From the IMG/VR virus record IMGVR_UViG_3300023083_000001, positions 62,001 through 126,000 of that record: DNA of 64,000 nucleotides. One strand, written 5' to 3'. Below, piece after piece: positions 6,319 to 29,959 of the stretch. Each line of letters begins with the position of its first letter. Within the stretch, counting starts at the first letter, position 1. The notes under the pieces were generated by a model. It saw only the letters and a list, made by a program, of their open reading frames with translations. It was not told the origin of the DNA and did no database searches. Both the position numbers and the translations under genes were made by a program.

Positions 6319-9192
6319 TCAATGATTACTTCTAGCTCGGGTGAGATTCTTGCGGATGTCTATCAGGTCATCTCTGAATTGACGGATGGCCGCTTGATCA
6401 TCTTTGAATGTTTCGCTGGCGAGATAGTCAGTACCGCAGACCGTGTCATAGATACGTTCGTTCTGGGTTGCAAAATACGTCTCGCGAGTTGTAGTCTTGT
6501 AAAGGTCGTTAAGTTGTTCGATCAACGGCTTCATCAACACTGGTTTATCTTCAGCCAACACACGCAAGCGTGTAGAATGACAACCCAAGCGGATCAGTTC
6601 TTTATCCAACGTGGATGACTCGGTAGAGACTTCATTACGGACAATCTTGATCGTAGTGTTACGCAAGATCTGGTGGATATCCACGTGCTCCACTTTGACC
6701 AGGTTCTGATCGACATGACGTTGGGTCTTGTACTCACCGTTCATGTTGTTCTGCTTGTTCCAGTTCGGCATCCATCCATCATCGTTGTCCGCTTTGATCG
6801 TGTAGATCCAAACGGTCAAGTCCAGGATGTCTTTCTTACTGAAGTCAGGATCAGAGATTTCGATGGTCAGGGTTTTACGCTTCTCATCGTAGCTGTAACG
6901 ATCCAGGAGGAATTTCTTCTCAATAGCTGAGGAAATGCCCAACATGATCGCTTCCGTCTTGTCATCAGCCGTATAGAGCCACGTGTTGTCTTCAGTCCCA
7001 TCCCACTGGACCAACTCACCACTGCGCTCAAAGCCAGGCATCAGCTCGTTCTGTTTATAAGCAGAACCGTGGTAGAGGTAAGGCGGCAGTGCGTAGGTGG
7101 TGTTACCCTCCAGATCCTCCTTGATGGATTCCTGCTCGTACTGACCAATGAAGTCGCGGCGCACCAATCCGTTAGTTTCCAGACTGATCTCGTTCATGAC
7201 CAGATCGAGGATCTCGTTATCGCGACCGTGTGATTCCAGAGCCAGTGTGTCAGTGTCCACGTTGGTGATACCAAGGATACTGGCAACGCTTTCCTGAGAC
7301 CATTGCAAGATGTCGTTACTACGAGTGGAGATGTTAGGCTCATCACTGGTGTCGAGCAGCATGTCCCAGACAAACACTGGACCGTCTTGACCCAGACGCG
7401 CTGCCCGTGCAATTGTCTGCACACGGATCGCATCACGGAACGGTTGGTTGATCAGGATCATGTCACTGGCGGGTGTCAACGGTACCGCTGTCGACAGAGA
7501 CTGGAAAGTCGCCGCTAACGGATTGACATCAGGATCAACGTAGAACGATTTAACGATACTGGACAAGTCCTTGTTCGTTGCGCCGTAAACGCGAGCGGTG
7601 TTGTAACCTTCCTTCTCGATGATGTCAGCGGTACGTTCCAACACCTCCACAAACGAGGTGAAGATCAGCATCTTCTTGCGAGCACCGTCGATGTACTTGA
7701 CGAAGTCGATATGCTCAACCATCTCCAAGTGACACTTACTGCGCATGCCGCCAACAATGGTTCCGAGCGCCTCACCCATGATCTTGAGCTTGACGTACTT
7801 GACCACCGACCTTGCGCCTTTGAAATCGTTCTTCAAAGGGTTGGTCAATGTTGGCAAGATGGTCTTCAGCTCGTACGTATTGCAGAGCTGCGCCTCAGCT
7901 TTCATAAGCTTTGGATCATACCCGGAAGATATAGTTCTAAAAGCAGATCGGTAATTACCGTAAGCACGACGATCAGCGTCAGTACGCAAAGTTCTTTCGA
8001 AGACACTGAGACCTTCCTGATATTTGTCATCGAAGTACTTCTTGTTCTTCGTGTAGTACAGCACGCGTTCAGCAATAAAGTCTCTCATTACTTCGCCAAT
8101 CGCCTGGAGCGTGTACTTCTTGGCGTTAGGCATTTGTACTTTGACAACTTCAGCGGTCACCACGGTGTCGACCACATCCTGTTTAGGCACGTGGAACTTC
8201 AAGTGCCCGATGCGGTGACGCAAAATGTCGTTAGCACGACGTGCATCTTTACCGTAGATCTTACGGAAGCGTTCTTCACACTCATCGTCAAAATCAGGGA
8301 CGGCGCATTTAAGGAAAGGAACGCACTCGATCCCCAATGCCAGGATCGGTGTACCCGATGCCCAGAGGTTGTAGCCGATGTCCTTAATGCTGCACAGCTC
8401 GACAAACATCTGCGTACGGTCTGCCGCCAGACGGTTGAAGTTGTGAGACTCGTCCAACACGATAAACGTGTCTTTGTTCTTGAACTCACGAGGATTGGCT
8501 TTTACAAACGCCAGGATCTTCTCGAGAGATTCGTAGTGGCAGATGTAGTAATGATGGTTGGTCGTTGGAGCCGTCCCATCGGTACTCATCCAGTACGTTT
8601 TCTTTTGCAGCATGATGTTAGCGATTGTATCTTCCCAGACGCGTTCAATAGCGTTCTTAGGCGTAACGATAATCACATGCTTAGCGTGCAAGCACTCACC
8701 GAGTACCAGGTCTGCCACGGTCTTACCAGAGCCTGCACCGGCATCCAGCATGTAGCCACGCAGGTTATACGCAGGCAGCATCTTACCGTAGAGTCGTACG
8801 AACTCTTTCTGGAACGGCTTGAGGGGGAAGGGCACCAGTTTATCAACCACTGACAAATCGGTGATGGATTCCACATCGCGATCGATCTGACCCAACCAGG
8901 TCTTCGTCAGCAGTGCATCGATGATCTTAGCCAGTACACGTTTAGGTGTACGGGATTGACGATCCTTGTAGATCGTTTCGCAGATATAAAGGAAGTCCAA
9001 ACCGAAGAAGTGTTTCATCTTCAGTTCACTGGCACGTACCGTGCTGAACATGTATTTGGAGATGGTGTTGTTACCCCAGATCCGATACATGTCTTTGAAC
9101 AACGCAAACGTACTGATCCCTTCCACCACAATGTGCTTGGGCGTGACTTCAACGTCCACGATTCCCAAACGATACTTTAGACCTGATAACAT
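6319..9192 (-). CDS. SNF2-like SF2 helicase with C-terminal extra domains
   Basis: Walker A DAGAGSGKT, DESH box, motif III SGTP, motif VI QTIARAARLG; about 300 aa of extension after LALES. Confidence 0.85.
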   Translation of the reverse strand: MLSGLKYRLGIVDVEVTPKHIVVEGISTFALFKDMYRIWGNNTISKYMFSTVRASELKMKHFFGLDFLYICETIYKDRQSRTPKRVLAKIIDALLTKTWLGQIDRDVESITDLSVVDKLVPFPLKPFQKEFVRLYGKMLPAYNLRGYMLDAGAGSGKTVADLVLGECLHAKHVIIVTPKNAIERVWEDTIANIMLQKKTYWMSTDGTAPTTNHHYYICHYESLEKILAFVKANPREFKNKDTFIVLDESHNFNRLAADRTQMFVELCSIKDIGYNLWASGTPILALGIECVPFLKCAVPDFDDECEERFRKIYGKDARRANDILRHRIGHLKFHVPKQDVVDTVVTAEVVKVQMPNAKKYTLQAIGEVMRDFIAERVLYYTKNKKYFDDKYQEGLSVFERTLRTDADRRAYGNYRSAFRTISSGYDPKLMKAEAQLCNTYELKTILPTLTNPLKNDFKGARSVVKYVKLKIMGEALGTIVGGMRSKCHLEMVEHIDFVKYIDGARKKMLIFTSFVEVLERTADIIEKEGYNTARVYGATNKDLSSIVKSFYVDPDVNPLAATFQSLSTAVPLTPASDMILINQPFRDAIRVQTIARAARLGQDGPVFVWDMLLDTSDEPNISTRSNDILQWSQESVASILGITNVDTDTLALESHGRDNEILDLVMNEISLETNGLVRRDFIGQYEQESIKEDLEGNTTYALPPYLYHGSAYKQNELMPGFERSGELVQWDGTEDNTWLYTADDKTEAIMLGISSAIEKKFLLDRYSYDEKRKTLTIEISDPDFSKKDILDLTVWIYTIKADNDDGWMPNWNKQNNMNGEYKTQRHVDQNLVKVEHVDIHQILRNTTIKIVRNEVSTESSTLDKELIRLGCHSTRLRVLAEDKPVLMKPLIEQLNDLYKTTTRETYFATQNERIYDTVCGTDYLASETFKDDQAAIRQFRDDLIDIRKNLTRARSNH

Positions 9193-9252: not shown

Positions 9253-9564
9253 TCACAGCCAATCTTCGGGGATATCGGGCAGATCTACAATCTGTCCTTT
9301 CAGGTCATGACTGCAATCATCCAGGAAGTTAATCTTGCCCGCTTGTACGAAGGCATGGCACACCCGACGTGGATTATTCCCCAGGACCACCAGGACGCTA
9401 GGAGACAGAGTGGGGGTGAGTACATCCCCATCCCACTGCCAAATAGCGCCGACGCTGTTGCGTTTGAGGATGGTCACTGGATGCAACATCATACAACCTG
9501 GACAAAAATATTCGAGGACGTTGTCATCGCAGAGGATCAGTTTAGGAGACAGGTACTTATCCAT
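9253..9564 (-). CDS. DUF6527-like Zn-binding protein
   Basis: FCPGC..H, W.WDG...PTLSPS, CH.F...G.I.FL.DC.H. Confidence 0.65.
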   Translation of the reverse strand: MDKYLSPKLILCDDNVLEYFCPGCMMLHPVTILKRNSVGAIWQWDGDVLTPTLSPSVLVVLGNNPRRVCHAFVQAGKINFLDDCSHDLKGQIVDLPDIPEDWL

Positions 9565-9899
9565 TAGACTACCTCGTTCCCGTTCGCTGGAAAGTCAGGC
9601 AGATCCACGGTTTGGTTTGCCAGTGGGTGCCAGCAGTCTGACAAGAACTGCAACTTACCATCCGTCAGAAAGAGATGGCAGATCTTGCTAGTACCGTCCT
9701 CTACAGTAGGTGGTAGTGTGGTCTTGATGCTAGGTGTGAAGGTAGGCTTGTCGTAGTCCTTATTAAAGCCCCACGCACACTGTGAGGGGTTATCGGGATG
9801 TTCTACTGTGACGCTGTGTTTGACTTCACAACCTGGACACCAGAACTGAATGATGTACCCGTGGAAGCTCTGCAACTTGGGAGACAGTGTAGCGTACAT
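9564..9899 (-). CDS. DUF6527-like Zn-binding protein (tandem paralog)
   Basis: WCPGC..H, PTFTPS, CH.FLTDG.LQFLSDCWH; 1-bp overlap with its paralog. Confidence 0.65.
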   Translation of the reverse strand: MYATLSPKLQSFHGYIIQFWCPGCEVKHSVTVEHPDNPSQCAWGFNKDYDKPTFTPSIKTTLPPTVEDGTSKICHLFLTDGKLQFLSDCWHPLANQTVDLPDFPANGNEVV

Positions 9900-14108: not shown

Positions 14109-14750
14109 TTACAGCGTACCCAGAACCACCGTAGTACCCGGTTGGTAATAGATACTTGTAGCAGCAACTGTCAGAGTAAATCCAGTCGCACCATTGGCAA
14201 TAGCACCATTGACAATGTCGCTCTGTTCCAACTTGAGACCGTACTTGGTGTTGATCGCAGCAAGCGTTGCCCAGATGGTAGAACCTACTGTCGCCGGTAG
14301 ACTCAACGTTTGACCTTCGAACGCTTCAGAGAGCAGGAAGCGGTGATAGTTGAACGTGTAGTCACCCTGATAACCCGAGGCACGTTTAGCACTCACCTTG
14401 ATGTAGGTGTTCAGGTAATCAGTGGTAGTCGGGTTGACCGTAGGGTTTGCGAAACTAACGGTGTCCAGTGTCAGCGATACCGATTTCTCTTTATTGATTG
14501 CTGCCAGTAACGCAACGATGCCGGACAACGCAAAGCTAGGACGTTTGACTTGGTCAGTCAGTGCGTAACCACTGATCCGTCGAATGTCGATCGGATCTTG
14601 CGAGGTGGTCAATGCGTAGCCGTTTACTTTACGAATTGTCAATGGGTCAACAACCGTCGCCAAAATGTAAGCTGTGGCTTTACGTATTTCTATCGTAGGT
14701 ACCGGCTTGGTGGCTACGTAGACATCAGCTGATCTTAAATTGGTACTCAT
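14109..14750 (-). CDS. tail adaptor-family protein with four 17-aa N-terminal repeats
   Basis: R at aa 6/23/40/57 and Y at 11/28/45/62; adaptor domain (LNT.I.V.A....GY.G..TF.Y.R). Confidence 0.7.
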   Translation of the reverse strand: MSTNLRSADVYVATKPVPTIEIRKATAYILATVVDPLTIRKVNGYALTTSQDPIDIRRISGYALTDQVKRPSFALSGIVALLAAINKEKSVSLTLDTVSFANPTVNPTTTDYLNTYIKVSAKRASGYQGDYTFNYHRFLLSEAFEGQTLSLPATVGSTIWATLAAINTKYGLKLEQSDIVNGAIANGATGFTLTVAATSIYYQPGTTVVLGTL

Positions 14751-14761
14751 GCGCCCTCCTA

Positions 14762-15838
14762 TTAAGTGGCTGGGGTGATGACAAGTTCTAAGTTGGCCAG
14801 ATCAGCCTTGGTAAATTTAGAACCGTCCAGGAGCGCCGCCAGAGAACCAACGCTTACGTTAACAGGAGTCGCACCGGCTGTCATCGCAATCGATATCGGG
14901 GATGTAGAACTACCGTTTACCGATATCGAACCACTGAGAGTCTGATCTCCCGCCGCATCTTTTGCAGAAGCCACTTTAGCATCGACACCAAGGATGGTTA
15001 CGTTACCGAGTACGCTTACATCTACCTTAAGTCTCAAAGGGGTGTTGTCCGATGGAACCCCCACTTTAGGTGCTGCCAACGATGCGGTGTCTTCTCTAGA
15101 TGTGTTCAACGCACCAACGACAGTAGAACCGCTCGGAGGACTGTATCCACTGCCAGAAGCACTCACCAGTGGTACCCGTTTAACCGTTATAGGTCCAAGT
15201 GGTTGAATAGGATCGTTCCCACCTGTCCCGTCATCAGTCAAGCAGTAGATGTCTGACCACGCTAACACGTCTGTAGGAGTTCCTGCGTTGTTCGAGACCC
15301 ACGCGGTAGATGGTGTTCCGCATTGTAAATAACCGTTCTTGAAACCGGCGCTTCGAAGAGCGGCCGGGATAGACACGTACCGTATGAACACACCATCGGC
15401 GTACGCACTGACTGTATTCGCTACGAAGTCGAATACAAGTTCGTAGTACCGATTGAATCCCGCGAAATCGGCGTCTGTGAATGGCGCCATGAGCGAGGCG
15501 GACGAGCCGCTCAGCACTGAGTTGAAACATAAGACGTAGGGTCCACCGAAGGTTGCAATCTTCTCCATTCTAATGCCGATGATGACCTTCACCGGTGTTA
15601 CGTCACCAACGAACAATTTCAAAGGCCACATCACTGGTCCAATCAACTGTGATGGGTTCGCCGCTGGTTTACCCACGATGATGCGGTCATTGACTATCCT
15701 TGGGGCTGGAACGGTAGCGGCTGTGGAAGGAGCCACTGACGGCATGTCTGAATAAGCCAACCCGTAACCGGTGAGTGGCTCGCCTACCGAAAACCCCTCG
15801 GGTAAGTTTTCAAAGCCGAATAGCTTAAGCTTTTTCAT
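14762..15838 (-). CDS. putative tail fibre/receptor-binding protein, ConA/LamG-like paralog L7
   Basis: Beta-rich; IGIR, YYEL.FD...YADG and LGP motifs; conserved C-terminal domain. Confidence 0.6.
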   Translation of the reverse strand: MKKLKLFGFENLPEGFSVGEPLTGYGLAYSDMPSVAPSTAATVPAPRIVNDRIIVGKPAANPSQLIGPVMWPLKLFVGDVTPVKVIIGIRMEKIATFGGPYVLCFNSVLSGSSASLMAPFTDADFAGFNRYYELVFDFVANTVSAYADGVFIRYVSIPAALRSAGFKNGYLQCGTPSTAWVSNNAGTPTDVLAWSDIYCLTDDGTGGNDPIQPLGPITVKRVPLVSASGSGYSPPSGSTVVGALNTSREDTASLAAPKVGVPSDNTPLRLKVDVSVLGNVTILGVDAKVASAKDAAGDQTLSGSISVNGSSTSPISIAMTAGATPVNVSVGSLAALLDGSKFTKADLANLELVITPAT

Positions 15839-15848
15839 GATGGTTCAC

Positions 15849-16952
15849 TTACCCAGTAATAAGTTTGAGTTTAGCCGCGTCCAGCTTCGCTTTGGTCCAA
15901 GCCGTGCCATCGGGAGCATTTCCAGCTACAAGAAGCGAAGTCCCGGACGCCATGACGTCACTAACTGTCAGCGAAGAAACCGCAGACTGATTAGCCCCGG
16001 ATACAACTTGAGCACTGAGATTAGCCGTGCTTCCATCTTTTCTACGGGCGGTCAGATTGTAAGCTACCGCGTTGATAGTGCCAACAAAGACAGGCGCCAC
16101 AAACCCTAAGTTAGCCGTAGGGTTTGCTGGGTCAGATGTTACGATTGGGGTTGATAAACTAGCTGCATCTGTAATAACAGTGTTCAACGCAGACACGACA
16201 TTACCTGCGGGAGTGACTACCCAGGTCGACTGATCCATACTAACCACTGGCGCCACCAATACCCGCTGAGACCCCAGCGGCCCGTTAGCCGTGCCATCGC
16301 TCGTAGTTTCACAGACGTAGATATCTTTGATCCAATAGGAGAAATCTCCCTTTACACCTGTGGACGACGGCGCCCTTCCGATGTTCAAATAACACGCTGT
16401 GCCAGCTTTTAATGCTGTCAGGGTGGTGCTGGTGATAGCAATATCTGCAATCGCAACTCCATCTACCCAACGGTGGATCACACCTGCCGCCACATCCCAC
16501 TGAGCTTCCAGATAATACTCTTGCTTAGATGTGTAGTTGGGAATACTACCTGCTGGGAACGCACAGCCAGTCGTAAGTTGTGCTGTGGTTGGGAGTGCGT
16601 ATGGCGTGATCGACAACGGCTCACTGTAGATATCGATGGCCGTAGTGGAACCTGGGGTACCATTGAGAAACCGTATTCCGATGGTGAACTTAGAAGTGGC
16701 GGTGGTGACCACTAACCCAAGATCACTTAACAGCGCGTTCAAACCGTTGGCTCTGGTCTGTGTCCCGCTGGCAACTAAATCGAAATCGCTGATACGCTTC
16801 AACCAGCCATCTTCGTATTTTGTATCGATATTAGTTCCAGCAGCAGCTGAGGAAGTAACCGATGTAAAAGGCGTTCCGCCCAACTTGACGGAGCCGTTGG
16901 TAACTGGTGGTTTGACCAAGTCCTCCCACCCTATAACTGCACGAATAGCCAT
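15849..16952 (-). CDS. putative tail fibre/RBP, ConA/LamG-like paralog L6
   Basis: MAIRAVIGWE..., YYLEAQWD...VDG, APDG.AWT..KL.AAKLKL. Confidence 0.6.
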   Translation of the reverse strand: MAIRAVIGWEDLVKPPVTNGSVKLGGTPFTSVTSSAAAGTNIDTKYEDGWLKRISDFDLVASGTQTRANGLNALLSDLGLVVTTATSKFTIGIRFLNGTPGSTTAIDIYSEPLSITPYALPTTAQLTTGCAFPAGSIPNYTSKQEYYLEAQWDVAAGVIHRWVDGVAIADIAITSTTLTALKAGTACYLNIGRAPSSTGVKGDFSYWIKDIYVCETTSDGTANGPLGSQRVLVAPVVSMDQSTWVVTPAGNVVSALNTVITDAASLSTPIVTSDPANPTANLGFVAPVFVGTINAVAYNLTARRKDGSTANLSAQVVSGANQSAVSSLTVSDVMASGTSLLVAGNAPDGTAWTKAKLDAAKLKLITG

Positions 16953-17002
16953 GCTTTCTCTCCCATTTGTTTATACAGTGTTGGTCGTCCATGACCGGCG
17001 GG

Positions 17003-18109
17003 TTATCCAGCGATGAGTTTGAGTTTGGCAGCTTGGATGCTGGCTCGAGTCCAGCGCGCGCCCGATGGAGACTTCTCACCTTGATACAACTTGAAACTCG
17101 GTGTAATTACAGAGAGTAAATTGTTAACCACTTGACTGGATTGATCAGTCCCTGTAATAACCTGAGAAGTCAATACGCCGGGCGAACCCCCAGCTTTCTT
17201 ACCCGTAGCGTTCAGAACAATACCGTTAATCTGACCGGCTGTGGAAGACATCGTCAGACCCAGGTTAGCAGTGACGTTATTTGGATCAGTCATAACTACT
17301 GGGGTCAATAAGGAAGCTTCATCCGTAATCGCGGTATTCAACGCTGCTACAGGATCGCCTGACGGTGTGGGTAACCATGACGCTTGATCTAAGGTGGTCA
17401 CGTTGATTGGAACAATACGCTGAGGCCCAAGGAAAGTATCGGCAGATCCATCATCGGTCTTCTCAATGACGTACATGTCCTTGAACCAGAAATCGTACGC
17501 GACAGTTGCGCCGCTGGTAGGTGTGTAACCCACCCCACCAGCAAAGAAAGCGGTGTTGCTGGTGAGTAAATTCTTTACCAACGTAACCATTGACAAATCA
17601 GCGATCGGTAAACCATCTACGCGTCTACGAATGACACCTGCTGTAACGTCAAATTGAGCTTCTAGATAATTCTCGATACCAGGTTTCCAGTTCGGAATGC
17701 TTCCGAATGGAAAAACAGCGCCGGCGGTGACGTTTGCACCAGCGCCACCCGTCGACAAGTCGGCAGTAAGGGAAATGGGTTGCGGCCACATGGAAGACAC
17801 CGTCACGTCCTGAGGTATCAGCCAACGGATACCAATTGTAATCACTGAGGCTGCCGATGTCACTAAGCCTAAGGCTGTCAGCGGGGCGGAGATGAAGTTC
17901 CGTTTACCTGATGTGTTGTTAGCAGTCGCTGGGTTGGTGATTGTTTTAACCCAGCCAGCTTCTTTTAGAAATGAAACACCTGCTCCTGCGGCGGTGCCGA
18001 AGTTAAAACTCATCGGCAGACCAGCGAAAGCGTACTTGGTCGCAGCGCCGTACATCTCACCAGTACGAAGCGCAAGTTCATCAAACCCTAGAATGGCACG
18101 AATAGCCAT
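17003..18109 (-). CDS. putative tail fibre/RBP, ConA/LamG-like paralog L5
   Basis: Start moved to MAIRAILGFD (18109) after a GGAG SD. Confidence 0.6.
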   Translation of the reverse strand: MAIRAILGFDELALRTGEMYGAATKYAFAGLPMSFNFGTAAGAGVSFLKEAGWVKTITNPATANNTSGKRNFISAPLTALGLVTSAASVITIGIRWLIPQDVTVSSMWPQPISLTADLSTGGAGANVTAGAVFPFGSIPNWKPGIENYLEAQFDVTAGVIRRRVDGLPIADLSMVTLVKNLLTSNTAFFAGGVGYTPTSGATVAYDFWFKDMYVIEKTDDGSADTFLGPQRIVPINVTTLDQASWLPTPSGDPVAALNTAITDEASLLTPVVMTDPNNVTANLGLTMSSTAGQINGIVLNATGKKAGGSPGVLTSQVITGTDQSSQVVNNLLSVITPSFKLYQGEKSPSGARWTRASIQAAKLKLIAG

Positions 18110-18120
18110 GGAACACTCCT

Positions 18121-19215
18121 TTATACAACGGTGAGTTTGAGCTTCGCAGCCAGAATTCCAGCACGTGTCCATTTGACACCCGATGGAGACTTCTCACCCT
18201 GATAGAGTTTATACCCGGAAGCCATATTGGATGTCATAGGTACTGATACCGCAGCCGATTGATCGGACCCTGTGATCAGTTGTCCGGTAACAGATGTGCT
18301 GGCGCCAGCGGCTTTCTTACCCGCTATGTTTAGACACACGGCGTTAATAGGCGCTGAGTTTGTAGGTGTCGTCAAACCTACATTGGCTACGTTGTTCGTT
18401 ACATCGTTTGTAACCACTGGCGTCAACAGCGATGCGGCATCGGTAATGTCTGCGTTCAACGCATCCACTGGAGTTCCAGACGGACTCGCCAACCAGGAAG
18501 CTTGGTCCACGCTTGCCGTGGTGATTGGAACAATACGCTGCGCGCCGAGGAATGTGTCGGCGGTCCCATCGCCAGTCTTCTCAATGACGTACATGTCCTT
18601 GAACCAGAATGAGTATTCGATAGTGCCTGGGGTACTGTTGTTAGGTGGAAATAGACCCGCCCCAAACTGCGCCGTTCCTGCGGCAATAGCGGCTGCTAGG
18701 CCAGAAGTGAATGGCAGATCGGCGATCGGGACGCCATCGACTTTCCTGCGGATGACCGCGGCGGCAACGTCCCACTGAGCTTCTAGGTAGTACTCTTGAC
18801 CCGCTACCCAGTTCGGAATTGAGCCGAAAGGAAAAACTGCACCATTGATGAATCCGCTGAAGCTAACCGCGGTAACAATCTCCATTGGCTGAGGCCAATA
18901 GTTACTGACTGTCACGTTGATCGGACACAGCCAGCGCATGCCTATGGTGAAAACCGAACTCGCGGTAGGAGTAAGACCCAGGGATTGGAGCGTACTGTAC
19001 AAATAGTTCATTTTGTTCAGGCCTGTCGACACAGTGGTGACAGTACCTTTACATTTCAACCAACCGCTTTCTTTGGTGTAAGTAACACCGGCAGCAGCCA
19101 GAGGTCCTGGTTTGAATAAGAAGGGAAGTGGACCCAGCGTAAGACCTGCTGTAGGAATCTGTTCCCCAGCGGGCATTGGTACATCGTCGTACCCGAAGAA
19201 ACTACGAATAGCCAT
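18121..19215 (-). CDS. putative tail fibre/RBP, ConA/LamG-like paralog L4
   Basis: Start moved to MAIRSFFGYD (19215); closest to L5. Confidence 0.6.
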   Translation of the reverse strand: MAIRSFFGYDDVPMPAGEQIPTAGLTLGPLPFLFKPGPLAAAGVTYTKESGWLKCKGTVTTVSTGLNKMNYLYSTLQSLGLTPTASSVFTIGMRWLCPINVTVSNYWPQPMEIVTAVSFSGFINGAVFPFGSIPNWVAGQEYYLEAQWDVAAAVIRRKVDGVPIADLPFTSGLAAAIAAGTAQFGAGLFPPNNSTPGTIEYSFWFKDMYVIEKTGDGTADTFLGAQRIVPITTASVDQASWLASPSGTPVDALNADITDAASLLTPVVTNDVTNNVANVGLTTPTNSAPINAVCLNIAGKKAAGASTSVTGQLITGSDQSAAVSVPMTSNMASGYKLYQGEKSPSGVKWTRAGILAAKLKLTVV

Positions 19216-19226
19216 GTTGAAACTCC

Positions 19227-19859
19227 TTAGCTCCAACGAATCGCTGGGTCAGTAAACAAGGTGGAGAACTGCGGCAATGTCTGACCGATCGTGACTTTAG
19301 AACCTGGAATGAACCAGTAGCTAGTGGATTTAGCAACTAGCTCGACCGTGTACGCCGACGCGGAAATCGGCCCATCCACCACGTCATCCACAGTCAACGT
19401 GATACCAACGACCGCACTGATAGCAGATAGCGCTTCGTAGATTGTGGTCGCGGTGCCGAGAGGGATGTTATTCGGATCCAGTGTCATCCTGGAAATAGGG
19501 ACACGGTTGTACCGAAACCATTTGGTTCCTTTGAGTCCTGAAGCTGCTGACGCTTTGACCTGGACTCTGGCATTGTAGTTAGCGTCGTTTGTCAAAGCTT
19601 CGACCGCTACCGCTGTGAAGTCTGTGGTAGGTCGAACGGTGTTGGCCTTGGCTACGATCATCAGCAGAACAGCCTGAAGCCCTGTCACTCCTTTGGGGAG
19701 TGATTTAATGGCTGGACCGATAAGGTATCCACCAATAGACCGAACCCCCACTTGTACTGGGGGGGAGCCGATCAAGTAACCGCTGACAGACCGAAGGCTT
19801 ACTTGGTTAGGGGGTGATACCGCCGCGTAACCGTTAATGGATCTCGCAGTTAAAGGCAT
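19227..19859 (-). CDS. tail adaptor-family protein with three 17-aa N-terminal repeats
   Basis: R at aa 6/23/40 and GY at 10-11/27-28/44-45. Confidence 0.7.
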   Translation of the reverse strand: MPLTARSINGYAAVSPPNQVSLRSVSGYLIGSPPVQVGVRSIGGYLIGPAIKSLPKGVTGLQAVLLMIVAKANTVRPTTDFTAVAVEALTNDANYNARVQVKASAASGLKGTKWFRYNRVPISRMTLDPNNIPLGTATTIYEALSAISAVVGITLTVDDVVDGPISASAYTVELVAKSTSYWFIPGSKVTIGQTLPQFSTLFTDPAIRWS

Positions 19860-19864
19860 GTCAA

Positions 19865-20908
19865 TTACCCCGTAACGTCTGGCGTGATGGTGATGACGGT
19901 CCCGTCAATCTTGCTAGCGTCCCATGCACCACCCGCAGGTGCGGTTGGCAAAGTAGCTATGGTCGATCCGTAAGCCTGCGTTTTCGGTACCGTGAGGTTA
20001 CCCGCTTGGACCGTGGTACCACCTTGAGTGACCTCAATTTTAGCCAAGGTCGCGTTATTACCTTTAGCAATCACCGAAGCCATCAACTGAACAGCGTTGA
20101 TTTTAAAACCTTCTGGCGTATTAGCTTTTAGGCTAAGCTTCAACGGACTTTTGTCTGTCGGAGAATCTACCGTTGCGGTTGCCGGTTGAGCAGCTGTCAA
20201 CGTAGTCAGCATGTTGGTAGTACCATCACTACCTGCCCAGGCTGTTGGAGTGGCCGTCGCTTCATCAGCGTAGACAGGGTAGGTGCTGACCGAACCCAGG
20301 CGTGCAACGATCCCGTCACCAGCGATGTTGTCCAGGATGTACATATCGCGGATGCTGCACAAGTTCGTACCGCCCGACAATGTCAGCGAGAAGAACAATG
20401 AAATTTTACCGGTCTTCATCGTGGCGATGTAAGCTGCGGTAGATACAGCGGTCAACGCTACCGACGATAACAGGAGTCCGTCACCGGAAATGGCCAACGT
20501 GTTCGCTGTAAAATCGATTTCAAATTCCAGATAAATCTCAGCACCTACCGCTTTAGCAGCCGTCGGTAGCAGTGAGTAATCCAACACCCAACCGGCTGTA
20601 CTGAAACCAATGTCAGGCCCCAGGGCAACAAAGTTACCTGTGGCGCCTGCAACCAGGGTTTTATGCCGGAAACCGATGACAATCTTGGTTGGGTTAGGCA
20701 CCAAGAACTGATCGAACGAAATACCAGCAATTGTTGCTGCCGATGTCGACGTGCCTGTGGTGGATGTCAAGGCTCCGTTACTGTCGATGATCAACGGTTT
20801 CCCAGTACTGGCGTTATACCGTGAAACGACGTAGCCTGACGTAGCAATCCACGCGGCGTCGTTAACGTTCCGAACGCAGTGGTCAAACGCAAAGATCTTG
20901 CGCAACAT
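19865..20908 (-). CDS. putative tail fibre/RBP, ConA/LamG-like paralog L3
   Basis: MLRKIFAFDH..., YLEFEID, AP.GGAW...I.....ITPD. Confidence 0.6.
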   Translation of the reverse strand: MLRKIFAFDHCVRNVNDAAWIATSGYVVSRYNASTGKPLIIDSNGALTSTTGTSTSAATIAGISFDQFLVPNPTKIVIGFRHKTLVAGATGNFVALGPDIGFSTAGWVLDYSLLPTAAKAVGAEIYLEFEIDFTANTLAISGDGLLLSSVALTAVSTAAYIATMKTGKISLFFSLTLSGGTNLCSIRDMYILDNIAGDGIVARLGSVSTYPVYADEATATPTAWAGSDGTTNMLTTLTAAQPATATVDSPTDKSPLKLSLKANTPEGFKINAVQLMASVIAKGNNATLAKIEVTQGGTTVQAGNLTVPKTQAYGSTIATLPTAPAGGAWDASKIDGTVITITPDVTG

Positions 20909-20913
20909 GGCAG

Positions 20914-21276
20914 TTACTCCGAATCAGTGTCAGTGGGAACGACTGGATCATTCCAGCACAGGAACAGATCACCTACAGGTGCAGTAGACCACTCTGGGAA
21001 CTTCACACGCAGCGCGTATTTGAAAAGGCTGAGGGTAGCGAACTCACGGTCGTTAAGACCGTTGTAGAGCACTACAGCGCCGTTGAGCGAGTACTCAGCG
21101 GTCATCTCGGTCTGGTTCCACATCTTCTGTTGTGCCATCGGACCGGATGCGTTCAAGGCAGCGGCAATTGCTCGCTGACCGGACTCGTTCAATTCACCTT
21201 CCGGGATAGCCGACAAGAGATCAGCGTGTTCGGTGAAATCGTTTCGGAGTAGATAATTGCGCCAATCAATGGACAT
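20914..21276 (-). CDS. stand-alone C-terminal domain of the adaptor family
   Basis: Aligns by eye with the C-half of 24885..25760 (DF, W, SL.GA.V..NGLN, KYAL, G.L.L.(W/Y)NDP). Confidence 0.65.
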   Translation of the reverse strand: MSIDWRNYLLRNDFTEHADLLSAIPEGELNESGQRAIAAALNASGPMAQQKMWNQTEMTAEYSLNGAVVLYNGLNDREFATLSLFKYALRVKFPEWSTAPVGDLFLCWNDPVVPTDTDSE

Positions 21277-21303
21277 GGTTTTGATCTCTTATCAAAAGGA
21301 GTG

Positions 21304-21801
21304 TTAGAAACCTGGTAGCGTGTCGCCACTGAACGCTGTCTCAATATCGAGCGCAACGTTGAAAGCAACTGTCACTGAACCGAACCAACCCAAGCTGTCT
21401 GGTTTACTTTCGATCAGGAACGTGATCCCACCATCGCCGTCATCCACGGTAGAATGTTCCACCAGGTCGTCGGAGGTAAAGGTAGCCCCTGAAAGGTTTT
21501 TCAGAACCGGTAACATAGCAGCCAGGTTCTGACCGCCAGTCACAGCGATACCTCTGAAGTTAGCCAAGCCTAATGGCGTTACATCCAGGCGGTCGTAGAA
21601 TACCTTAGTGCCACCCATACCCAACGTGGATGAGTCCGTAAACTTGACGCCCACCTTGGTGTTCTTTCCGTACAAGGTCTTCTCAGCCGCAGTAGTTGCA
21701 ACCGGTGTACCGAATACCAGATCACTGACAGGGACAATAATTCCAGCCTTTACGCTGAACATCGCCGCCAGATCCGCTTTACTATCTAAGTAGATTGACA
21801 T
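21304..21801 (-). CDS. stand-alone N-terminal domain of the adaptor family
   Basis: YDRLD, FT.DD, SLGW.GSV and terminal TLPGF motifs. Confidence 0.65.
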   Translation of the reverse strand: MSIYLDSKADLAAMFSVKAGIIVPVSDLVFGTPVATTAAEKTLYGKNTKVGVKFTDSSTLGMGGTKVFYDRLDVTPLGLANFRGIAVTGGQNLAAMLPVLKNLSGATFTSDDLVEHSTVDDGDGGITFLIESKPDSLGWFGSVTVAFNVALDIETAFSGDTLPGF

Positions 21802-21809
21802 GACGGCCT

Positions 21810-22760
21810 CTACGCATTCCAGTGAAGGATAAGTTTACCGCTGAACCAACTAGCGTCCACACTCTGGATCACCATCGCTCGGGTGAACCGTGCGGAGTTA
21901 GCTTCGGGGATGGAGGTAGATGGTAGGGTGTAGATGTAAGCTGTACACCCCGCCAGACCTGATGCGAGGCTGCTGTCAGTTTTAGCCCAGTTGGTCTTAC
22001 CTGAGTTGTTATTGAGCCAGGCAATGACGGCGTCGAGGTTTGCGTTAGCTGCGGTGGTGATCAGGAAACTGGTCGACAGTGCGGCAAGGTTGGCTTTAAC
22101 CGCTGAAGCGTCAAGGCCGTAGAGTTGCCATTCGCCGACAGGTTTGCGACTTTGCGAGAAGTCATTACCACCTGGATAGAGTCGGCCAATCAACGCTCGG
22201 TTAGCGTCGGTAATGATTTCGGTTATAGGACGTTTGGAACGAACCCACTGAAGCGAAACTGTACCTTTGTAGCAAAGGCCGTTAACAGCGATACCGTTGT
22301 AAACGGTATCGGCAGGCACAGTCACTACGGCGGCCATATCGGTTTCGAGGAGACTCAACCCGTATTTTGCGTTAACGTCTGCGATGAATTGGGCACGCGT
22401 GATGGAACCCGCTGCGCTGTAGAAATCAGAACGCATGATCATGTTGCGAAACAGCGCACTCATGTCAATGCGACGATACCTGACAGTGACCTTACCGATC
22501 GTACCTGAACCCGGCGGACCAGACACCAGGACCGAGGTATCACACTTGAAAGGATCTGATGGATCAACAGTAACGGATGCCATCCCAGTAAACTGTACTT
22601 TCGACATCCCGTACGCTGCTTTGAAGCCAGGGTTGGATACTTCGATCAGGTCGTAAATCAGTCGGTTTTGCGGGAGGCGTAGGTCGCTCGGCGGTTGTGC
22701 TGGCGCAGGTGCAGGATCTCCCAACGCATAACCCGTTACGGCACTTAGTGCAATAGTCAT
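21810..22760 (-). CDS. two-domain tail adaptor-family protein with one N-terminal repeat
   Basis: LSAVTGYALG then LIYDLI...NP, YRRID, INAKYGL-like motifs. Confidence 0.65.
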   Translation of the reverse strand: MTIALSAVTGYALGDPAPAPAQPPSDLRLPQNRLIYDLIEVSNPGFKAAYGMSKVQFTGMASVTVDPSDPFKCDTSVLVSGPPGSGTIGKVTVRYRRIDMSALFRNMIMRSDFYSAAGSITRAQFIADVNAKYGLSLLETDMAAVVTVPADTVYNGIAVNGLCYKGTVSLQWVRSKRPITEIITDANRALIGRLYPGGNDFSQSRKPVGEWQLYGLDASAVKANLAALSTSFLITTAANANLDAVIAWLNNNSGKTNWAKTDSSLASGLAGCTAYIYTLPSTSIPEANSARFTRAMVIQSVDASWFSGKLILHWNA

Positions 22761-22763
22761 ATC

Positions 22764-23777
22764 TCAACCTACTGTGTCTGGGGTGATGACTGCCTCACTA
22801 GCGTTCAGTTTACTGATCGTCCACGCCGCTCCATCTGGAGCTTTATGGACTACGCCGAGAGAAGTTCCATAGGAAATTGTGGTCGGCGCAGGTACCGAAG
22901 CCGTTGCTTTGTCAGTGCCGTTCAAACTGAGTTTAGTCAGTGAGGATGTGGCGCCGTCATTGGATTTGTTGGCAACGGACAGTTCGACCGCATTGATGTT
23001 GATCGGGACGGTGTCTTTCAAACCATCCAGTAACAAACCTACGGTCAATGGCGCCTTCGACGATGGGCTGGAAAGAGTCGCTTTCCCCGAAGTGCCGAGA
23101 CCTTTCTTCAACGCTGGAAGAAGTTCGCTAGCGTCACTGGCTGCCCAACCTGTACCTTGCGCCTTATCAAGCAAGACCGGATAGACTTGCCGAGGACCTA
23201 GACGGCCTGTAGGTCCACCGTCTGCGGAGGCCACATCGTTGCTGATGTAAATGTCGCGAAGACTGGCGCGTTGAGTCTTGGCGTACCCGCGTGTCAAGAT
23301 GCCGACTATCGACTGAGCAGTGCCGGCTTTCATTGCCGCGATGTAGGAAGAAAGACTTGGACCATTGCTGATTGCCACGTCGTCCACCCATCGACGTGTT
23401 GCACCTGTCGTTAGGTTGATCTCTACTTCCAAGTAATAGATACCACCCACTTTGACCGATGGAATCTCGCTCATGTAGAAGATCACAGAACCCAGATTAG
23501 GTCCATACATCAACGTATGGTTGGCGTCAAGCACGTCAACCCTTACACGCATCCCAATGTAGACCAGGTTCGCAGGCGCTGCGCAGGCAGCGAAGTGTTT
23601 CAGATACAGACCTTCGGGAATGGTGGTAGCGGTCCCTTGTGGAGTCACCCATCCATTAACAATGGTCGCGGTGTCCGATGCTTCGTTGGCGAACAAAGGA
23701 CCCAGGAAAGGAGACCAAACGCTTTGAGGTACGCTTGGTGGTAAATGTTCAAATCCGATAATTGCTTTAACGGCCAT
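22764..23777 (-). CDS. putative tail fibre/RBP, ConA/LamG-like paralog L2
   Basis: MAVKAIIGFEH..., YYLEVEIN...WVD, APDGAAWT. Confidence 0.6.
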   Translation of the reverse strand: MAVKAIIGFEHLPPSVPQSVWSPFLGPLFANEASDTATIVNGWVTPQGTATTIPEGLYLKHFAACAAPANLVYIGMRVRVDVLDANHTLMYGPNLGSVIFYMSEIPSVKVGGIYYLEVEINLTTGATRRWVDDVAISNGPSLSSYIAAMKAGTAQSIVGILTRGYAKTQRASLRDIYISNDVASADGGPTGRLGPRQVYPVLLDKAQGTGWAASDASELLPALKKGLGTSGKATLSSPSSKAPLTVGLLLDGLKDTVPININAVELSVANKSNDGATSSLTKLSLNGTDKATASVPAPTTISYGTSLGVVHKAPDGAAWTISKLNASEAVITPDTVG

Positions 23778-23792
23778 GTAAATGACTCCTGA

Positions 23793-24827
23793 TTAACTCA
23801 CAATGTCCGGGGTCAGCAACAGTGAGGTCGAATCGATATTGGCCTTCGTCCATGCCACACCACCTGGGGCTTTAGGGTAGACGCCGAGCTGGAACGTGTA
23901 TTTTAGCGTTGTACCCGGAGTCACTGGAGCACCGGCCAGCGTATCAGAACCGTTCTTCAGCGACACACCAAACTGGTTCGAAGCTGTGTTACCGTTACCC
24001 GCAAACAAGAGTGACACGGCATTGATCGTCTGACCGTCAGCTACGTCGCATTTGAGGCTGATGTCCAATGGCGCTTTACTCGCACCAGAGGTTGCTACCG
24101 AAGTGTTGGTTGAATCAGCTGATCGGGTGAGAGTGCTCAACAACGATCCACCATCGGTGGTGGTCCAATCAGTGCCGCTGATTACGTCAGCGTAGATCGG
24201 TACCAACTGCTGAGGGCCCAGCATACCAACAAACCCGTCACCGGCCACGTCATCGGAGACATAGATGTCACGATAAGCCATTGTGCTATTACCTGAGTTG
24301 TTTCCAGAAAAGCGAAACTCAAGGTAGAAAAGACGTGCCAGTAGTTGAGCATTGGTCAGTTCAGCTGGCATGCCGACGTTCTTAATGAACGTGCTGTTGA
24401 CATAAACCGCAATAACTCGAGTGGTGATGTTGAGGACGAATTCGAGATAGCTGATTGCTCCGACAGCACTGTTTGCGGCCGGAAGGTCGCTGTCAGCCAG
24501 AAGCTGCATGGCGTATTTACTCAAATCTGTAAGACCGATGTAATAACTCGATTGAAACGTTTCCACAACCTTCATTCTAATGCCGATGAATATCTTGGTC
24601 GGCGTACCCGATACCGGGAAAGGGGCAAGGTTAAGCATCAGGTTAGTGTACCCGCTAGGCGAAACGCCTGCGGGCGTAGTCAACCAACCGTTGTTATCAA
24701 TGTAAATGTTCTTGCCGAATCCACCGCTAAGACTGGGTGAATATGTGGTGTACCCACTGTTGTACTGCCAGCTATTGAGAGCCAGCAGCTTTGGACAATG
24801 GTCAAAGCCAACCAATGCGCGAAGCAT
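23793..24827 (-). CDS. putative tail fibre/RBP, ConA/LamG-like paralog L1
   Basis: MLRALVGFDH..., YLEFVLN, APGGVAWTKA.I. Confidence 0.6.
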   Translation of the reverse strand: MLRALVGFDHCPKLLALNSWQYNSGYTTYSPSLSGGFGKNIYIDNNGWLTTPAGVSPSGYTNLMLNLAPFPVSGTPTKIFIGIRMKVVETFQSSYYIGLTDLSKYAMQLLADSDLPAANSAVGAISYLEFVLNITTRVIAVYVNSTFIKNVGMPAELTNAQLLARLFYLEFRFSGNNSGNSTMAYRDIYVSDDVAGDGFVGMLGPQQLVPIYADVISGTDWTTTDGGSLLSTLTRSADSTNTSVATSGASKAPLDISLKCDVADGQTINAVSLLFAGNGNTASNQFGVSLKNGSDTLAGAPVTPGTTLKYTFQLGVYPKAPGGVAWTKANIDSTSLLLTPDIVS

Positions 24828-24884
24828 AGCTAATACTCCATGATGAGTCAGGAATGGGTGCCCTCAGGGCACCCACTATGCCGC

Positions 24885-25760
24885 TTACGCGTTGAGGTCG
24901 TAAGGATCGTTGTAGTGCAAGTACATGATGCCCGACGGCGTTGTGACGGCGTCACGCAGCTTCAGAGCCAGAGCGTACTTGTAGTTCGGGTTCGTTGGCA
25001 GCGCAGCGCTGTTCAAACCGTTACTTACAACTGTTGCACCCGACAGCGACCAGGTAGCGGTGCTGGACGATTCGTTCCACAGCGTTTTGCCCGAACCGAT
25101 ATCTAGAGCTTTGAACGCTGCAACCAGCGCAGTGACCGTAGCAGCCGGCAGTGCACCGGCGTTCAGCGTAGCCAACGTGTTGAAGTACGACGTGAAGTCG
25201 TAGCCGTACATGTAGAGCTGTGCGTACGTGTCGGTATCGTTCGCGGTTGGGTAGTTCAGACCCTCAAGCGTTGTGTCGGTAACAACCGAGTTCAACGAAG
25301 CACCACCCGCCGTGATGTTCAATGTGACACTGCCGATCCAACCGATGGAGTTGGTTTTGGCAGTCAGCACAACCGAACGAGTACCATCACCTGCGTCTAC
25401 AATCGCAGTGTCTTCGATATCGTCAGTGGTAAAGTGCAAACCGTTCCAGTACGACAGCCATGGGATCAACCCATGTGCAGATGTCACACCGTAACCTGTC
25501 AGGGTAAACCCTTTGAGGTTGGTGCCGTTCAGATCGTTCAGTTTCAAACGATCGTACACGATGGACTTACGGCCTTTGAACTGACCGCCTGCTTTGGCAC
25601 CAACGACAATGCCGGTGTTACGCAGTGTCGTTTGATCTTTCCAGGTACCAGAGACAGGCACCGGGTTACTGAACTCCACGTCGTTCAACGTAAAGGTCGT
25701 CGCGTTCTTCGCATTCAGACCTGCGAGTAGATCAACGACTGATACACTTTGATAGGACAT
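24885..25760 (-). CDS. two-domain tail adaptor-family virion protein
   Basis: Family motifs YDRL, FTTDDI, SIGWIGSV and C-terminal G..YLHYN. Confidence 0.7.
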   Translation of the reverse strand: MSYQSVSVVDLLAGLNAKNATTFTLNDVEFSNPVPVSGTWKDQTTLRNTGIVVGAKAGGQFKGRKSIVYDRLKLNDLNGTNLKGFTLTGYGVTSAHGLIPWLSYWNGLHFTTDDIEDTAIVDAGDGTRSVVLTAKTNSIGWIGSVTLNITAGGASLNSVVTDTTLEGLNYPTANDTDTYAQLYMYGYDFTSYFNTLATLNAGALPAATVTALVAAFKALDIGSGKTLWNESSSTATWSLSGATVVSNGLNSAALPTNPNYKYALALKLRDAVTTPSGIMYLHYNDPYDLNA

Positions 25761-25774
25761 TAACTTCGCTCCGA

Positions 25775-26731
25775 TCAGACGTTGTAGTGGATGTAGTGAG
25801 TACCTGCACCGTACGTCGCTTCAAGCGCGGTTGGAACGGTAAGGATCAATACACGATTGTAATAATCAGCATTAGCCTCAGGCGCCGACAACTTACCTGC
25901 GGCAGTAGACAGATCTACTACGCGACCATTCCAGGTGCTAAAGCCGTACGCCGTACCGTCCGGCGTGTCTGTAACAAGCGTGGTGCCGTAAAGAGCGTTG
26001 AGACGGGTGAGGAAGCGGGCCATCCACTGGATGAGCTGCGTGGATGCGCCTTCCCAGCTATTAGGATAACTATTCCACTTAACGCCAGCCAGGATGAAGT
26101 CAGACCAGTCAACACCGTACGCCATGTTGCTGACAACCACCGCGTGAGCGCCGCTGAAGTCATTACCACCTGGGAACTTACGAGTACCATCCAGATCAGT
26201 CACAGCGATCATGCCCGAAATATCCTGACCATCCGCGCGCCATTTAAGCGTGAACGAACCGGTGTAGCCCAAACTGCCAGGTTTAGCGTTGACGGTGACC
26301 GATGTAGTGTAGTAACCGTTTTCCTGAGTAGAACCCAGCAAGATATTTCCGTCGATCACGTCATCAGTGGTCAAGTTGAGACCGTACTGCTGGTTGATCG
26401 ATTGTAGCAGGTCGTAGACGCTGAAGACGACCGCGTTTGGATTGCCCGAGTTCTGCGCTGTCGAGAACTTGTTGATCTGGATAGTCATACCCCGAGTCAA
26501 CGTGGCCAGGTTCAGACGGCGGTAGTTGACAGACTTACGACCGAGGTAATCTTTACCGGTAATTGCCGCCACCACGACTGCGGTATTCAGAAGCGGTTGA
26601 CCTGCGACGGTAGCAGCAGCTGGGACACCCAAGGTGGCGTTAGCTGGAGATACGGGAATCGGCATCGATGGGTTGGCCTGGTTGATGAGGTCATACACCA
26701 GCGCAGCCGATGACTTGTTGAAAATAGGCAT
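25775..26731 (-). CDS. two-domain tail adaptor-family virion protein
   Basis: YRRLNL, INQQYGLNLTTDD, SLGYTGS, G..YIHYN. Confidence 0.7.
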   Translation of the reverse strand: MPIFNKSSAALVYDLINQANPSMPIPVSPANATLGVPAAATVAGQPLLNTAVVVAAITGKDYLGRKSVNYRRLNLATLTRGMTIQINKFSTAQNSGNPNAVVFSVYDLLQSINQQYGLNLTTDDVIDGNILLGSTQENGYYTTSVTVNAKPGSLGYTGSFTLKWRADGQDISGMIAVTDLDGTRKFPGGNDFSGAHAVVVSNMAYGVDWSDFILAGVKWNSYPNSWEGASTQLIQWMARFLTRLNALYGTTLVTDTPDGTAYGFSTWNGRVVDLSTAAGKLSAPEANADYYNRVLILTVPTALEATYGAGTHYIHYNV

Positions 26732-26736
26732 CTTGA

Positions 26737-27528: not shown

Positions 27529-27544
27529 GACCTAAACCTCGTAG

Positions 27545-28372: not shown

Positions 28373-28390
28373 ATTTGAAACCCCTTAATA

Positions 28391-29182: not shown

Positions 29183-29231
29183 AAAGCATCTCCTGGTTCA
29201 TGGGGAATACCAGCTAACTAACCACAAACAA

Positions 29232-29271
29232 AATAGACAGGAGTGGGGCCGAAACCCCACTCCTGTCTATT
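29232..29271 (-). terminator. intrinsic terminator
   Basis: 17-bp stem AATAGACAGGAGTGGGG/CCCCACTCCTGTCTATT; T-rich tail on the - strand. Confidence 0.65.
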
Positions 29272-29285
29272 CGAAGGGGAGCTGA

Positions 29286-29831: not shown

Positions 29832-29928
29832 GGAATAATTCTCTCGAGAATATACAACAGAAGTGATCGTGTCGGCCGACACATAGAATTGAGGGTGCTC
29901 TTCCTTAAGTTCCTATAGCATCAACAGC

Positions 29929-29959
29929 ATAGAGAGGAGGGTCAACCCCTCCTCTCTAT
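29929..29959 (-). terminator. hairpin terminator
   Basis: 13-bp stem ATAGAGAGGAGGG/CCCTCCTCTCTAT. Confidence 0.6.

Follow-up and report, generated by a model that had tools for sequence, protein, structure and literature searches.

Domain organisation of the helicase fusion protein P0001

The DNA analysed here is a window of 64,000 nucleotides which corresponds to bases 62,001-126,000 of the IMG/VR virus record IMGVR_UViG_3300023083_000001; the complete record has a length of 258,357 bp and carries direct terminal repeats. The source virus is a phiKZ-like jumbo phage. Its genome encodes a phiKZ-type major head protein, a gp175-like prohead protease and orthologs of phiKZ gp203 and gp282. The window contains an open reading frame (ORF) for a protein of 957 amino acids, designated P0001, in which a virion-type helicase is followed by a linker, a domain with the predicted fold of an ADP-ribosyltransferase (ART) and a helical tail (Table 1). 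An original prediction, made from the DNA sequence alone, had described the product of this ORF as an SNF2 helicase carrying an ART-like domain between head-protease motifs. The frame proved to be open over 957 residues, and all six motifs quoted in that prediction are present at the coordinates given for them. A megablast search with the gene as query against 50,697 phage records yielded no nucleotide-level match.

Table 1. Features of the P0001 gene and of known or likely head genes in the same window. Positions refer to the window; a slash within a motif marks the candidate cut.
Feature	Position	Strand	Remarks
Whole ORF, P0001, 957 aa	6319..9192	(-)	virion-type SF2/SNF2-like helicase, linker, predicted ART-fold domain and helical tail
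Helicase module, aa 1-645	7258..9192	(-)	Pfam domains; ortholog of phiKZ gp203, RAY gp131 and PhiPA3 gp233
Linker 1, aa 646-702	7087..7257	(-)	acidic, predicted flexible; holds candidate sites LALE/S and ISLE/T
Candidate site 1, LALES, aa 650-654	7231-7245	(-)	E653
Candidate site 2, ISLET, aa 669-673	7174-7188	(-)	E672
Predicted ART-fold domain, aa 703-852	6637..7086	(-)	phiKZ gp282 / phrog_13483 family
YLYHGS, aa 705-710	7063-7080	(-)
H708	7069..7071	(-)	motif I His, LYHGS, end of strand 1
WLYT, aa 738-741	6970-6981	(-)
Y740	6973..6975	(-)	motif II Tyr, LYTA, strand 2
NGEY, aa 818-821	6730-6741	(-)
E820	6733..6735	(-)	candidate catalytic Glu, start of strand EYKT
Candidate site 3, VSTES, aa 855-859	6616..6630	(-)	E858, directly after the ART domain
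C-terminal helical tail, aa 860-957	6322..6615	(-)	lineage-specific module
Downstream gene, 392 aa	5083..6261	(-)	N-terminus MDLKNLLMDLAIE/SGE, similar to propeptides of inner-body or ejection proteins; strict motifs at aa 10 and 101
Second downstream gene, 411 aa	3828..5063	(-)	five h-S-h-E-S motifs in first 84 aa, densest cluster of the genome
Major head protein, 757 aa	37805-40078	(+)	phrog_3231, PHROG match

Pfam detected the domains ResIII (residues 124-254) and Helicase_C (residues 503-601) in P0001, and the helicase part matched phrog_62, DNA helicase, in PHROGs; the helicase core is thus real. In tblastn searches, residues 1 to ~660 matched one gene each in ~200 phiKZ-like phages with identities of 34-42%, among them a 'virion-associated SWI/SNF family helicase' of Erwinia phage RAY and gp233 of phage PhiPA3. 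The similarity to phiKZ gp203, annotated as 'structural protein', extends over 657 residues (35% identity, E = 5e-125) and is one-to-one, as gp203 is the sole match in phiKZ and P0001 the sole reciprocal match in the source genome. The helicase module is classified from these alignments as the ortholog of phiKZ gp203, RAY gp131 and PhiPA3 gp233. For phiKZ gp203, packaging in the head, proteolytic processing and co-pelleting with DNA were reported (10.1101/2025.11.23.690004); for RAY gp131, localisation with capsids and presence in virions were described (10.1101/2023.02.24.529968), and PhiPA3 gp233 localises to capsid bouquets (PMC10643120).

The part of P0001 behind the helicase is not shared by these phage proteins. 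None of the 207 phage-collection records matched by tblastn spans more than 74% of P0001 in one place, and the alignments of the helicase orthologs stop at or before about residue 725. phiKZ gp203, RAY gp131 and PhiPA3 gp233 possess, like P0001, a conserved h-S-L-E/S element at the end of the helicase, but unlike P0001 they end ~50 residues beyond it. Among the matches listed in an exhaustive profile search, fused helicase-ART forms originate from metagenomes only.

Family, predicted fold and candidate active site of the C-terminal domain

Residues 703-863 of P0001 matched phrog_13483, a PHROG of unknown function (E = 4e-45), and phiKZ gp282, encoded by PHIKZ282 (40% identity, E = 1e-28). Standalone homologs of this segment were identified in 65 phage records, 63 of which belong to Pseudomonas phiKZ-like phages, including that with PHIKZ282. 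A word-index protein search retrieved only three relatives, and the exhaustive search was required to obtain 176 cluster representatives of the family, most of those listed being standalone proteins of 150-170 residues that lack a propeptide. The rows examined contained no function annotation for the gp282 family, which is of 'unknown function' in PHROGs and has no model in Pfam.

A family alignment built from 142 of the 176 cluster representatives revealed near-invariant residues at L706, H708, S710, P719, W730, D731, E734, N736, Y740, Y797, N815, E820, K822 and T823. The His of YLYHGS, the Tyr of WLYT and the Glu of NGEY, which the original prediction had pointed to, are all among them: H708 is conserved in 140/140, Y740 in 141/142 and E820 in 139/142 sequences, and H708 and Y740 are spaced by 32 residues. 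With the family alignment as input, AlphaFold2 modelled residues 703-852 with a predicted local distance difference test (pLDDT) value of 91.7 and a predicted template modelling score of 0.85. In the model, YLYHGS forms strand 1 and LYTA strand 2, while EYKT opens a later strand.

The model was aligned to all 48,161 PDB cluster representatives. The best of these was KptA/Tpt1 with Z = 9.2 and a root-mean-square deviation of 2.0 Å over 84 residues, which comprise the NAD-binding lobe only; it was followed by Scabin, CARDS toxin, mouse Tpt1, the Rhs toxin TreX, pertussis S1 and Arr, and further matches included PltA, LT, DarT and diphtheria toxin. In total, 15 of the 16 top representatives are ARTs (Z = 5.6-9.2). 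Foldseek recovered these families from the PDB as well, although at weak E-values (for Tpt1, E = 0.025 at a probability of 0.99), and returned DarT, Arr, ART-PolyVal and Tpt1 from the viral models of BFVD. Matches to AFDB clusters comprised DUF3990, DUF952, FRG and enterotoxin-like entries; a features search of the ESM Atlas pointed to Arr-ms, which is regarded as a lead only. Comparison of the 142-sequence profile with the KptA family alignment by hhalign gave E = 7.5e-5 and a probability of 62%, pairing LPPYLYHGS with PPEFLYHGT and NTWLYTADD with RHYVHLSAD of KptA; against the single E. coli KptA sequence the probability was only 8.9%. Relative to KptA, the family contains a specific 14-residue insert which holds the invariant W730-D731-x-x-E734-x-N736.

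The structure comparisons bear out the prediction of an ART-like domain behind the helicase, with Tpt1/KptA as the leading match, and we consider an ART fold of residues 703-852 to be very probable. The phiKZ gp282 / phrog_13483 family is accordingly proposed, on the basis of the structure and profile comparisons, as a new family of the ART superfamily with a candidate triad of the H-Y-E type, and the domain is probably an NAD+-using enzyme.

The GenBank start of PHIKZ282 (MPGFKRSG...; L001:4992-5507, ~256554-257069 of the phiKZ record) drops the strand 1 that bears the histidine. An in-frame ATG located 18 codons upstream yields MNKPELLYHGSLYKQDEL... and restores this strand, so that the deposited PHIKZ282 is probably N-terminally truncated. 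A Macro domain protein (PF01661, 30 bits, above cut-off) is encoded outside the window at G000:C1:3785-4078 (+). It is a possible ADP-ribose binder or hydrolase and could relate to the ART or to ADP-ribosylating defences of the host.

Candidate protease sites in the linkers

Expected motif frequencies were derived from the 309-ORF proteome of the source phage itself. The 76 linker residues of P0001 contain three copies of the motif [SA]-x-E-[ST], as compared to 0.11 expected (Poisson P ~2e-4), and h-[SAG]-h-E occurs twice in the linkers versus 0.086 expected. In the alignment, site 1 (TLALE/S) corresponds to L-[SA]-L-E of every relative, fused or split, and to ESLE/S of phiKZ gp203. A second h-[SA]-h-E is located 10-35 residues ahead of the ART domain in nearly all relatives, and site 3 (VSTE/S) shares its alignment column with PAME/S, PSME/S, ASFE/S and PSFE/G of relatives which carry a different module of 300 residues downstream. 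Apart from these positionally conserved sites, the linkers of the relatives are variable. Twelve relatives together contain 18 strict motifs in 702 upstream residues as compared to 0.79 expected, a figure which is descriptive only because the 12 relatives are not independent. In a model of residues 560-957, pLDDT values were below 50 at residues 647-660 and 669-693, above 90 over the ART domain, and dropped after residue 852.

The source phage itself uses similar motifs in other proteins. The N-terminal 165 residues of its capsid protein, the propeptide region, contain YSVES, PSLES, VSTES, YSTES and PAME, with VSTES being identical to site 3 of P0001. The gp175-like prohead protease homolog contains PSLES ~60 residues before its C-terminus, a position in line with the autocleavage reported at the C-termini of phiKZ gp175 and SPN3US gp245 (PMC5694885, PMC9026906). 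The sites bracketing the ART domain, which lie at module boundaries, exceed chance expectation and are conserved, are candidate substrates of a gp175-type protease.

Split, fused and exchanged modules in relatives

Two close relatives, L008 and L009, share 71-72% identity with P0001 over the C-terminal part of the helicase, and the ART domain of one of the pair (P0002) is 56% identical to that of P0001. In both loci (L008:3190-7497, L009:3190-6630), the helicase and ART genes are parted exactly at site 1 by a gene for a GIY-YIG homing endonuclease, which is encoded on the other strand. The split helicase ends with ...VDLESLTLD at its stop codon, and the ART gene opens with M..DLIELSLE/AAG, which resembles the propeptide of a head protein. 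As the genes are split in these relatives, the two halves apparently work as separate polypeptides.

At least seven cluster representatives (clustered at 50% identity) carry the ART domain as a C-terminal fusion. The identities of their helicases range from 43 to 81%, which indicates that the fusion has persisted over a long divergence. The reverse order is found in P0112, where an N-terminal ART domain precedes a helicase of the same family (36% identity); at its junction ...RATE/SMSGF..., MSGF is the normal start of the helicase. A quick maximum-likelihood tree grouped the main C-terminal fusions together with the split forms and placed P0029 and P0112 elsewhere, which suggests that helicase and ART were fused at least twice independently; this tree has Shimodaira-Hasegawa-like approximate likelihood ratio test support only and many open forks, and fragments as well as 26 unlisted cluster representatives were left out of it.

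The tail behind site 3 (residues 860-957) is predicted to form helices with pLDDT values of 54-85 and thus agrees, with moderate confidence, with the helical tail of ~100 residues expected from the original prediction. It showed no match to any Pfam or PHROG family. A homolog was detected solely in Pseudomonas phage Psa21, where a small ORF surrounded by head genes (35% identity, E = 1e-9; L011:4001-4255) lies between two genes for hypothetical proteins of 538 and 237 residues. The same block contains genes for a putative RNA polymerase beta subunit and a 'virion structural protein' and is tentatively read, from gene order and size, as the counterpart of phiKZ gp175-178. The match begins ahead of the annotated start of PSA21_241, which may be mis-called.

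The closest fused relative, P0005, with a helicase 81% identical to that of P0001, is devoid of the tail, and others possess the 300-residue module in its place; the C-terminus therefore seems to act as an exchangeable cargo position. In P0006, a metagenomic protein of 814 residues, the ART domain is followed by two such modules in tandem, in a beads-on-a-string arrangement with S-M-E sites at each junction; ASME/R and VSME/G lie at the internal module junction. The 300-residue module ends in a conserved ALLHWMDRS[IV]K, and PHROGs searches with it returned nothing useful.

Proposed mechanism and alternative explanations

We propose that P0001 is a head-packaged helicase-ART polyprotein which is cut in maturation and delivered at infection, and whose ART domain modifies an early target. 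Taken as a whole, this reading appears to us reasonably probable. The polyprotein idea is well supported by comparison, although unproven, because the fold and triad, the conserved sites, the motifs shared with the phage's own propeptides and the separate genes of relatives all agree with it. The helicase part would bring the whole of P0001 into the prohead. There, the prohead protease would separate helicase, ART domain and tail, which are presumably joined by flexible linkers with [SA]-x-E/[ST] sites of the type used by gp175-like proteases. The separated pieces would enter the host together with the DNA, and the ART domain would use host NAD+ to modify its target. The original prediction had assumed release at injection; this part is not maintained, since cutting by a prohead protease would fall in head maturation. 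Packaging of P0001 in the head is judged likely with good confidence, and cleavage of at least one linker site during maturation fairly probable, whereas the chances that the ART is delivered with the DNA and active early are about even.

As targets of the ART, a protein, as for T4 Alt, or a nucleic acid, as for Tpt1, DarT and PARP, are both candidates. Tpt1/KptA, the nearest relatives, and DarT, PARP, pierisin and Scabin, which match as well, act on nucleic acids. The ART might ride on the DNA-bound virion helicase and ADP-ribosylate nucleic acid instead of protein; host DNA, host RNA or the injected phage genome, at its ends or its bases, could serve as substrate. Such a reading is compatible with the nucleic acid activity of the nearest relatives, the co-pelleting of gp203 with DNA and the at least two fusions, and we regard it as tentative and unlikely to hold.

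Several observations weigh against the polyprotein interpretation. Over the whole of P0001, the loose motif [SAG]-x-E occurs 14 times with 11.4 occurrences expected, which is not above chance. The claim that head-protease motifs bracket the domain thus holds for the linkers, where the motifs are enriched, conserved in position and matched by propeptide motifs of the same phage, and fails for the loose motif. The conserved L-[SA]-L-E could instead represent a structural or targeting helix, as a low-confidence helix prediction would allow. phiKZ gp282 is a standalone protein without propeptide, and a literature search on gp282/PHIKZ282 gave no match and no report of gp282 in the virion. The structural scores of the ART domain are moderate (Foldseek E ~0.03, template modelling scores of 0.35-0.4), and PDB sequence searches, performed with the single sequence and with the family profile, gave no meaningful match. 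Pfam searches with the domain and all 142 family members found no ART model or other credible family, so that the ART assignment rests on structure and one profile-profile match. The correspondence of E820 to a known catalytic Glu is inferred from secondary structure and conservation.

Instead of being processed, P0001 might stay intact as a bifunctional enzyme in which the ART is tethered to the helicase and guided to DNA, RNA or a transcription complex, with the L-[SA]-L-E elements being structural or interaction motifs and not cleavage sites. The existence of both fusion orders (C-terminal ART in P0001 and P0005, N-terminal ART in P0112), together with the at least two independent fusions suggested by the quick tree, argues for a functional coupling and not only for co-packaging, and the motif segments are indeed predicted as short helices. 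However, the two halves need not be covalently joined, since in close relatives a homing endonuclease gene stands between separate genes for helicase and ART. Moreover, the junction motifs match propeptide motifs in the capsid protein and protease of the same phage, and phiKZ gp203 was reported to be processed (10.1101/2025.11.23.690004). In view of both sides, we consider an uncleaved enzyme, and with it a purely structural role of the motifs, fairly unlikely. Even less credence, to the point of being highly improbable, is given to a chance or recent fusion without functional meaning, with coincidental protease-like motifs. The chance frequency of the loose motif and a tail almost without relatives would agree with it, but at least seven cluster representatives with helicase identities of 43-81% share the fusion, and the motif positions are conserved.

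A different question is whether an ART fold necessarily implies ADP-ribosylation of a macromolecule, as the domain might hydrolyse NAD+ as an NADase, act as a phosphotransferase or end-capping enzyme in the manner of Tpt1, modify small molecules as Arr does, or serve as a non-catalytic binding module. Tpt1/KptA is the top match in structure as well as profile, Arr and RES NADase toxins are also among the structural matches, and the family has its own invariant W730-D731-x-x-E734-x-N736 insert. In addition, one member of the ART family is fused to a YAcAr SLOG domain, and SLOG domains are linked to nucleotide-derived ligands. On the other hand, transferases such as PARP, diphtheria toxin and DarT typically have an invariant Glu as the third residue of the triad, and the almost complete conservation of H, Y and E speaks against a dead domain. 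The catalytic Arg-His-Arg-Arg tetrad of Tpt1 resides in an N-terminal lobe that is absent here, the structure match being confined to chain residues 86-180. Altogether, we rate these non-ADP-ribosylating functions as improbable.

Comparison with known systems

The direct homolog of the P0001 domain is phiKZ gp282, which shares the same invariant residues and differs in being standalone, whereas the domain of P0001 is embedded behind a virion helicase between protease-type linkers. Profile comparison led to no known family other than Tpt1/KptA, whose hYHG[ST] and strand 2 motifs match. In contrast to Tpt1/KptA, the P0001 domain has the additional 14-residue insert, and reading of the KptA consensus suggests His (VHLS) and Val (NGVWL) in place of the Tyr and Glu of P0001; only the His position was aligned by a tool, and the equivalence of E820 with NGVWL was judged by eye only. 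Membership in the Tpt1/KptA family (PF01885) was rejected because the catalytic N-terminal winged-helix lobe is absent and PF01885 was not found in the genome; none of the 142 family members gave a Pfam match.

T4 Alt is a member of the R-S-E clade of ARTs and has its own N-terminal targeting peptide, whereas the ART of P0001 shows H-Y-E and its presumed carrier is the helicase. A kinship with T4 Alt was likewise rejected, as the conserved residues are H, Y and E, not R-S-E, and the structural neighbours are led by Tpt1. The effector had been predicted to be Alt-like; this stands in the sense of a functional analogue and not of a close relative. T4 Alt resembles the proposed P0001 in being an ART in the capsid which the prohead protease processes by cutting after Glu and which is delivered together with DNA (PMC5694885, PMC7824862).

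Polyvalent proteins are injected multidomain effectors in which SWI2/SNF2 ATPases and ART domains occur together and which are processed before packaging (Iyer et al. 2017, PMC5512222). They typically contain their own zincin-like metallopeptidase and a DNA methylase, and their ART belongs to a different family. In P0001, Pfam found no peptidase or other hub domain besides the helicase domains, and the tail is without family match; unlike in polyvalent proteins, processing of P0001 would occur in trans via the prohead protease. A survey of jumbo phages reported ARTs in all groups, and the phiKZ gp282 family is not named in the accessible part of its text (PMC7824862).

Neighbouring genes

The two genes immediately downstream of P0001 have the densest N-terminal clusters of strict motifs in the genome (ISLES, MSLES, ISVES; LAIES, VSLEA). 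The gene for 392 residues showed neither a tblastn nor a PHROG match, and no database homolog was found for that of 411 residues. By analogy to phiKZ gp93, for which processing at SLE-13 was described (PMC5694885), both products are likely processed inner-head or ejection proteins. Similar proteins of 415-443 residues with motifs near residues 10 and 100 are encoded elsewhere in the genome, e.g. at G000:C1:233035-234366. Directly upstream of the helicase gene lie two tandem paralogs, 9253-9564 (-) and 9564-9899 (-), which belong to phrog_3362, of unknown function.

The major head protein gene (segment 37784-40078) lies in the stretch of highest GC content of the window (0.575). The C-terminal tail of the capsid protein is rich in Gly, Thr, Pro and Ala, and an ORF of 725 residues on the strand opposite to its gene had no family match and is probably a shadow ORF. 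A long run of ORFs of 120-390 residues on the same strand extends over 14109-30498 (-); of the 23 ORFs located at 14-33 kb, 19 have one or more paralogs within the block, which hence constitutes a large paralog array, with PHROG matches to 'virion structural protein' and phrog_2448.

Significance

Head-packaged ARTs, namely T4 Alt, and injected multidomain proteins with SWI2/SNF2 and ART domains are already known (PMC5512222). New are the proposed placement of gp282 / phrog_13483 in the ART superfamily, the insertion of a domain of this family into the Chimalliviridae virion helicase behind candidate linkers for a protease acting in trans, and the split by a homing endonuclease at the first candidate site. 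A predicted fold and a candidate active site are hereby provided for a family that was unannotated in all libraries searched and occurs in at least 65 sequenced phiKZ-like phages, phiKZ among them. Nucleus-forming jumbo phages rely on proteins that they inject together with the DNA, and to our knowledge almost no activities have been assigned to these proteins apart from the virion RNA polymerase.

The analysis leads to specific predictions, namely cuts at E653, E672 and E858 and three candidate catalytic residues, for which phiKZ gp282 and gp203 offer a model. Moreover, P0001 and its relatives illustrate how cargo modules are exchanged in nature behind a putative head-targeted carrier, the position being taken by the tail, the 300-residue module or nothing. 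If the nucleic acid reading is true, it would add a capsid-delivered nucleic-acid ADP-ribosyltransferase to phage biology and would give the widespread gp282 family a role in genome protection or host shut-off.

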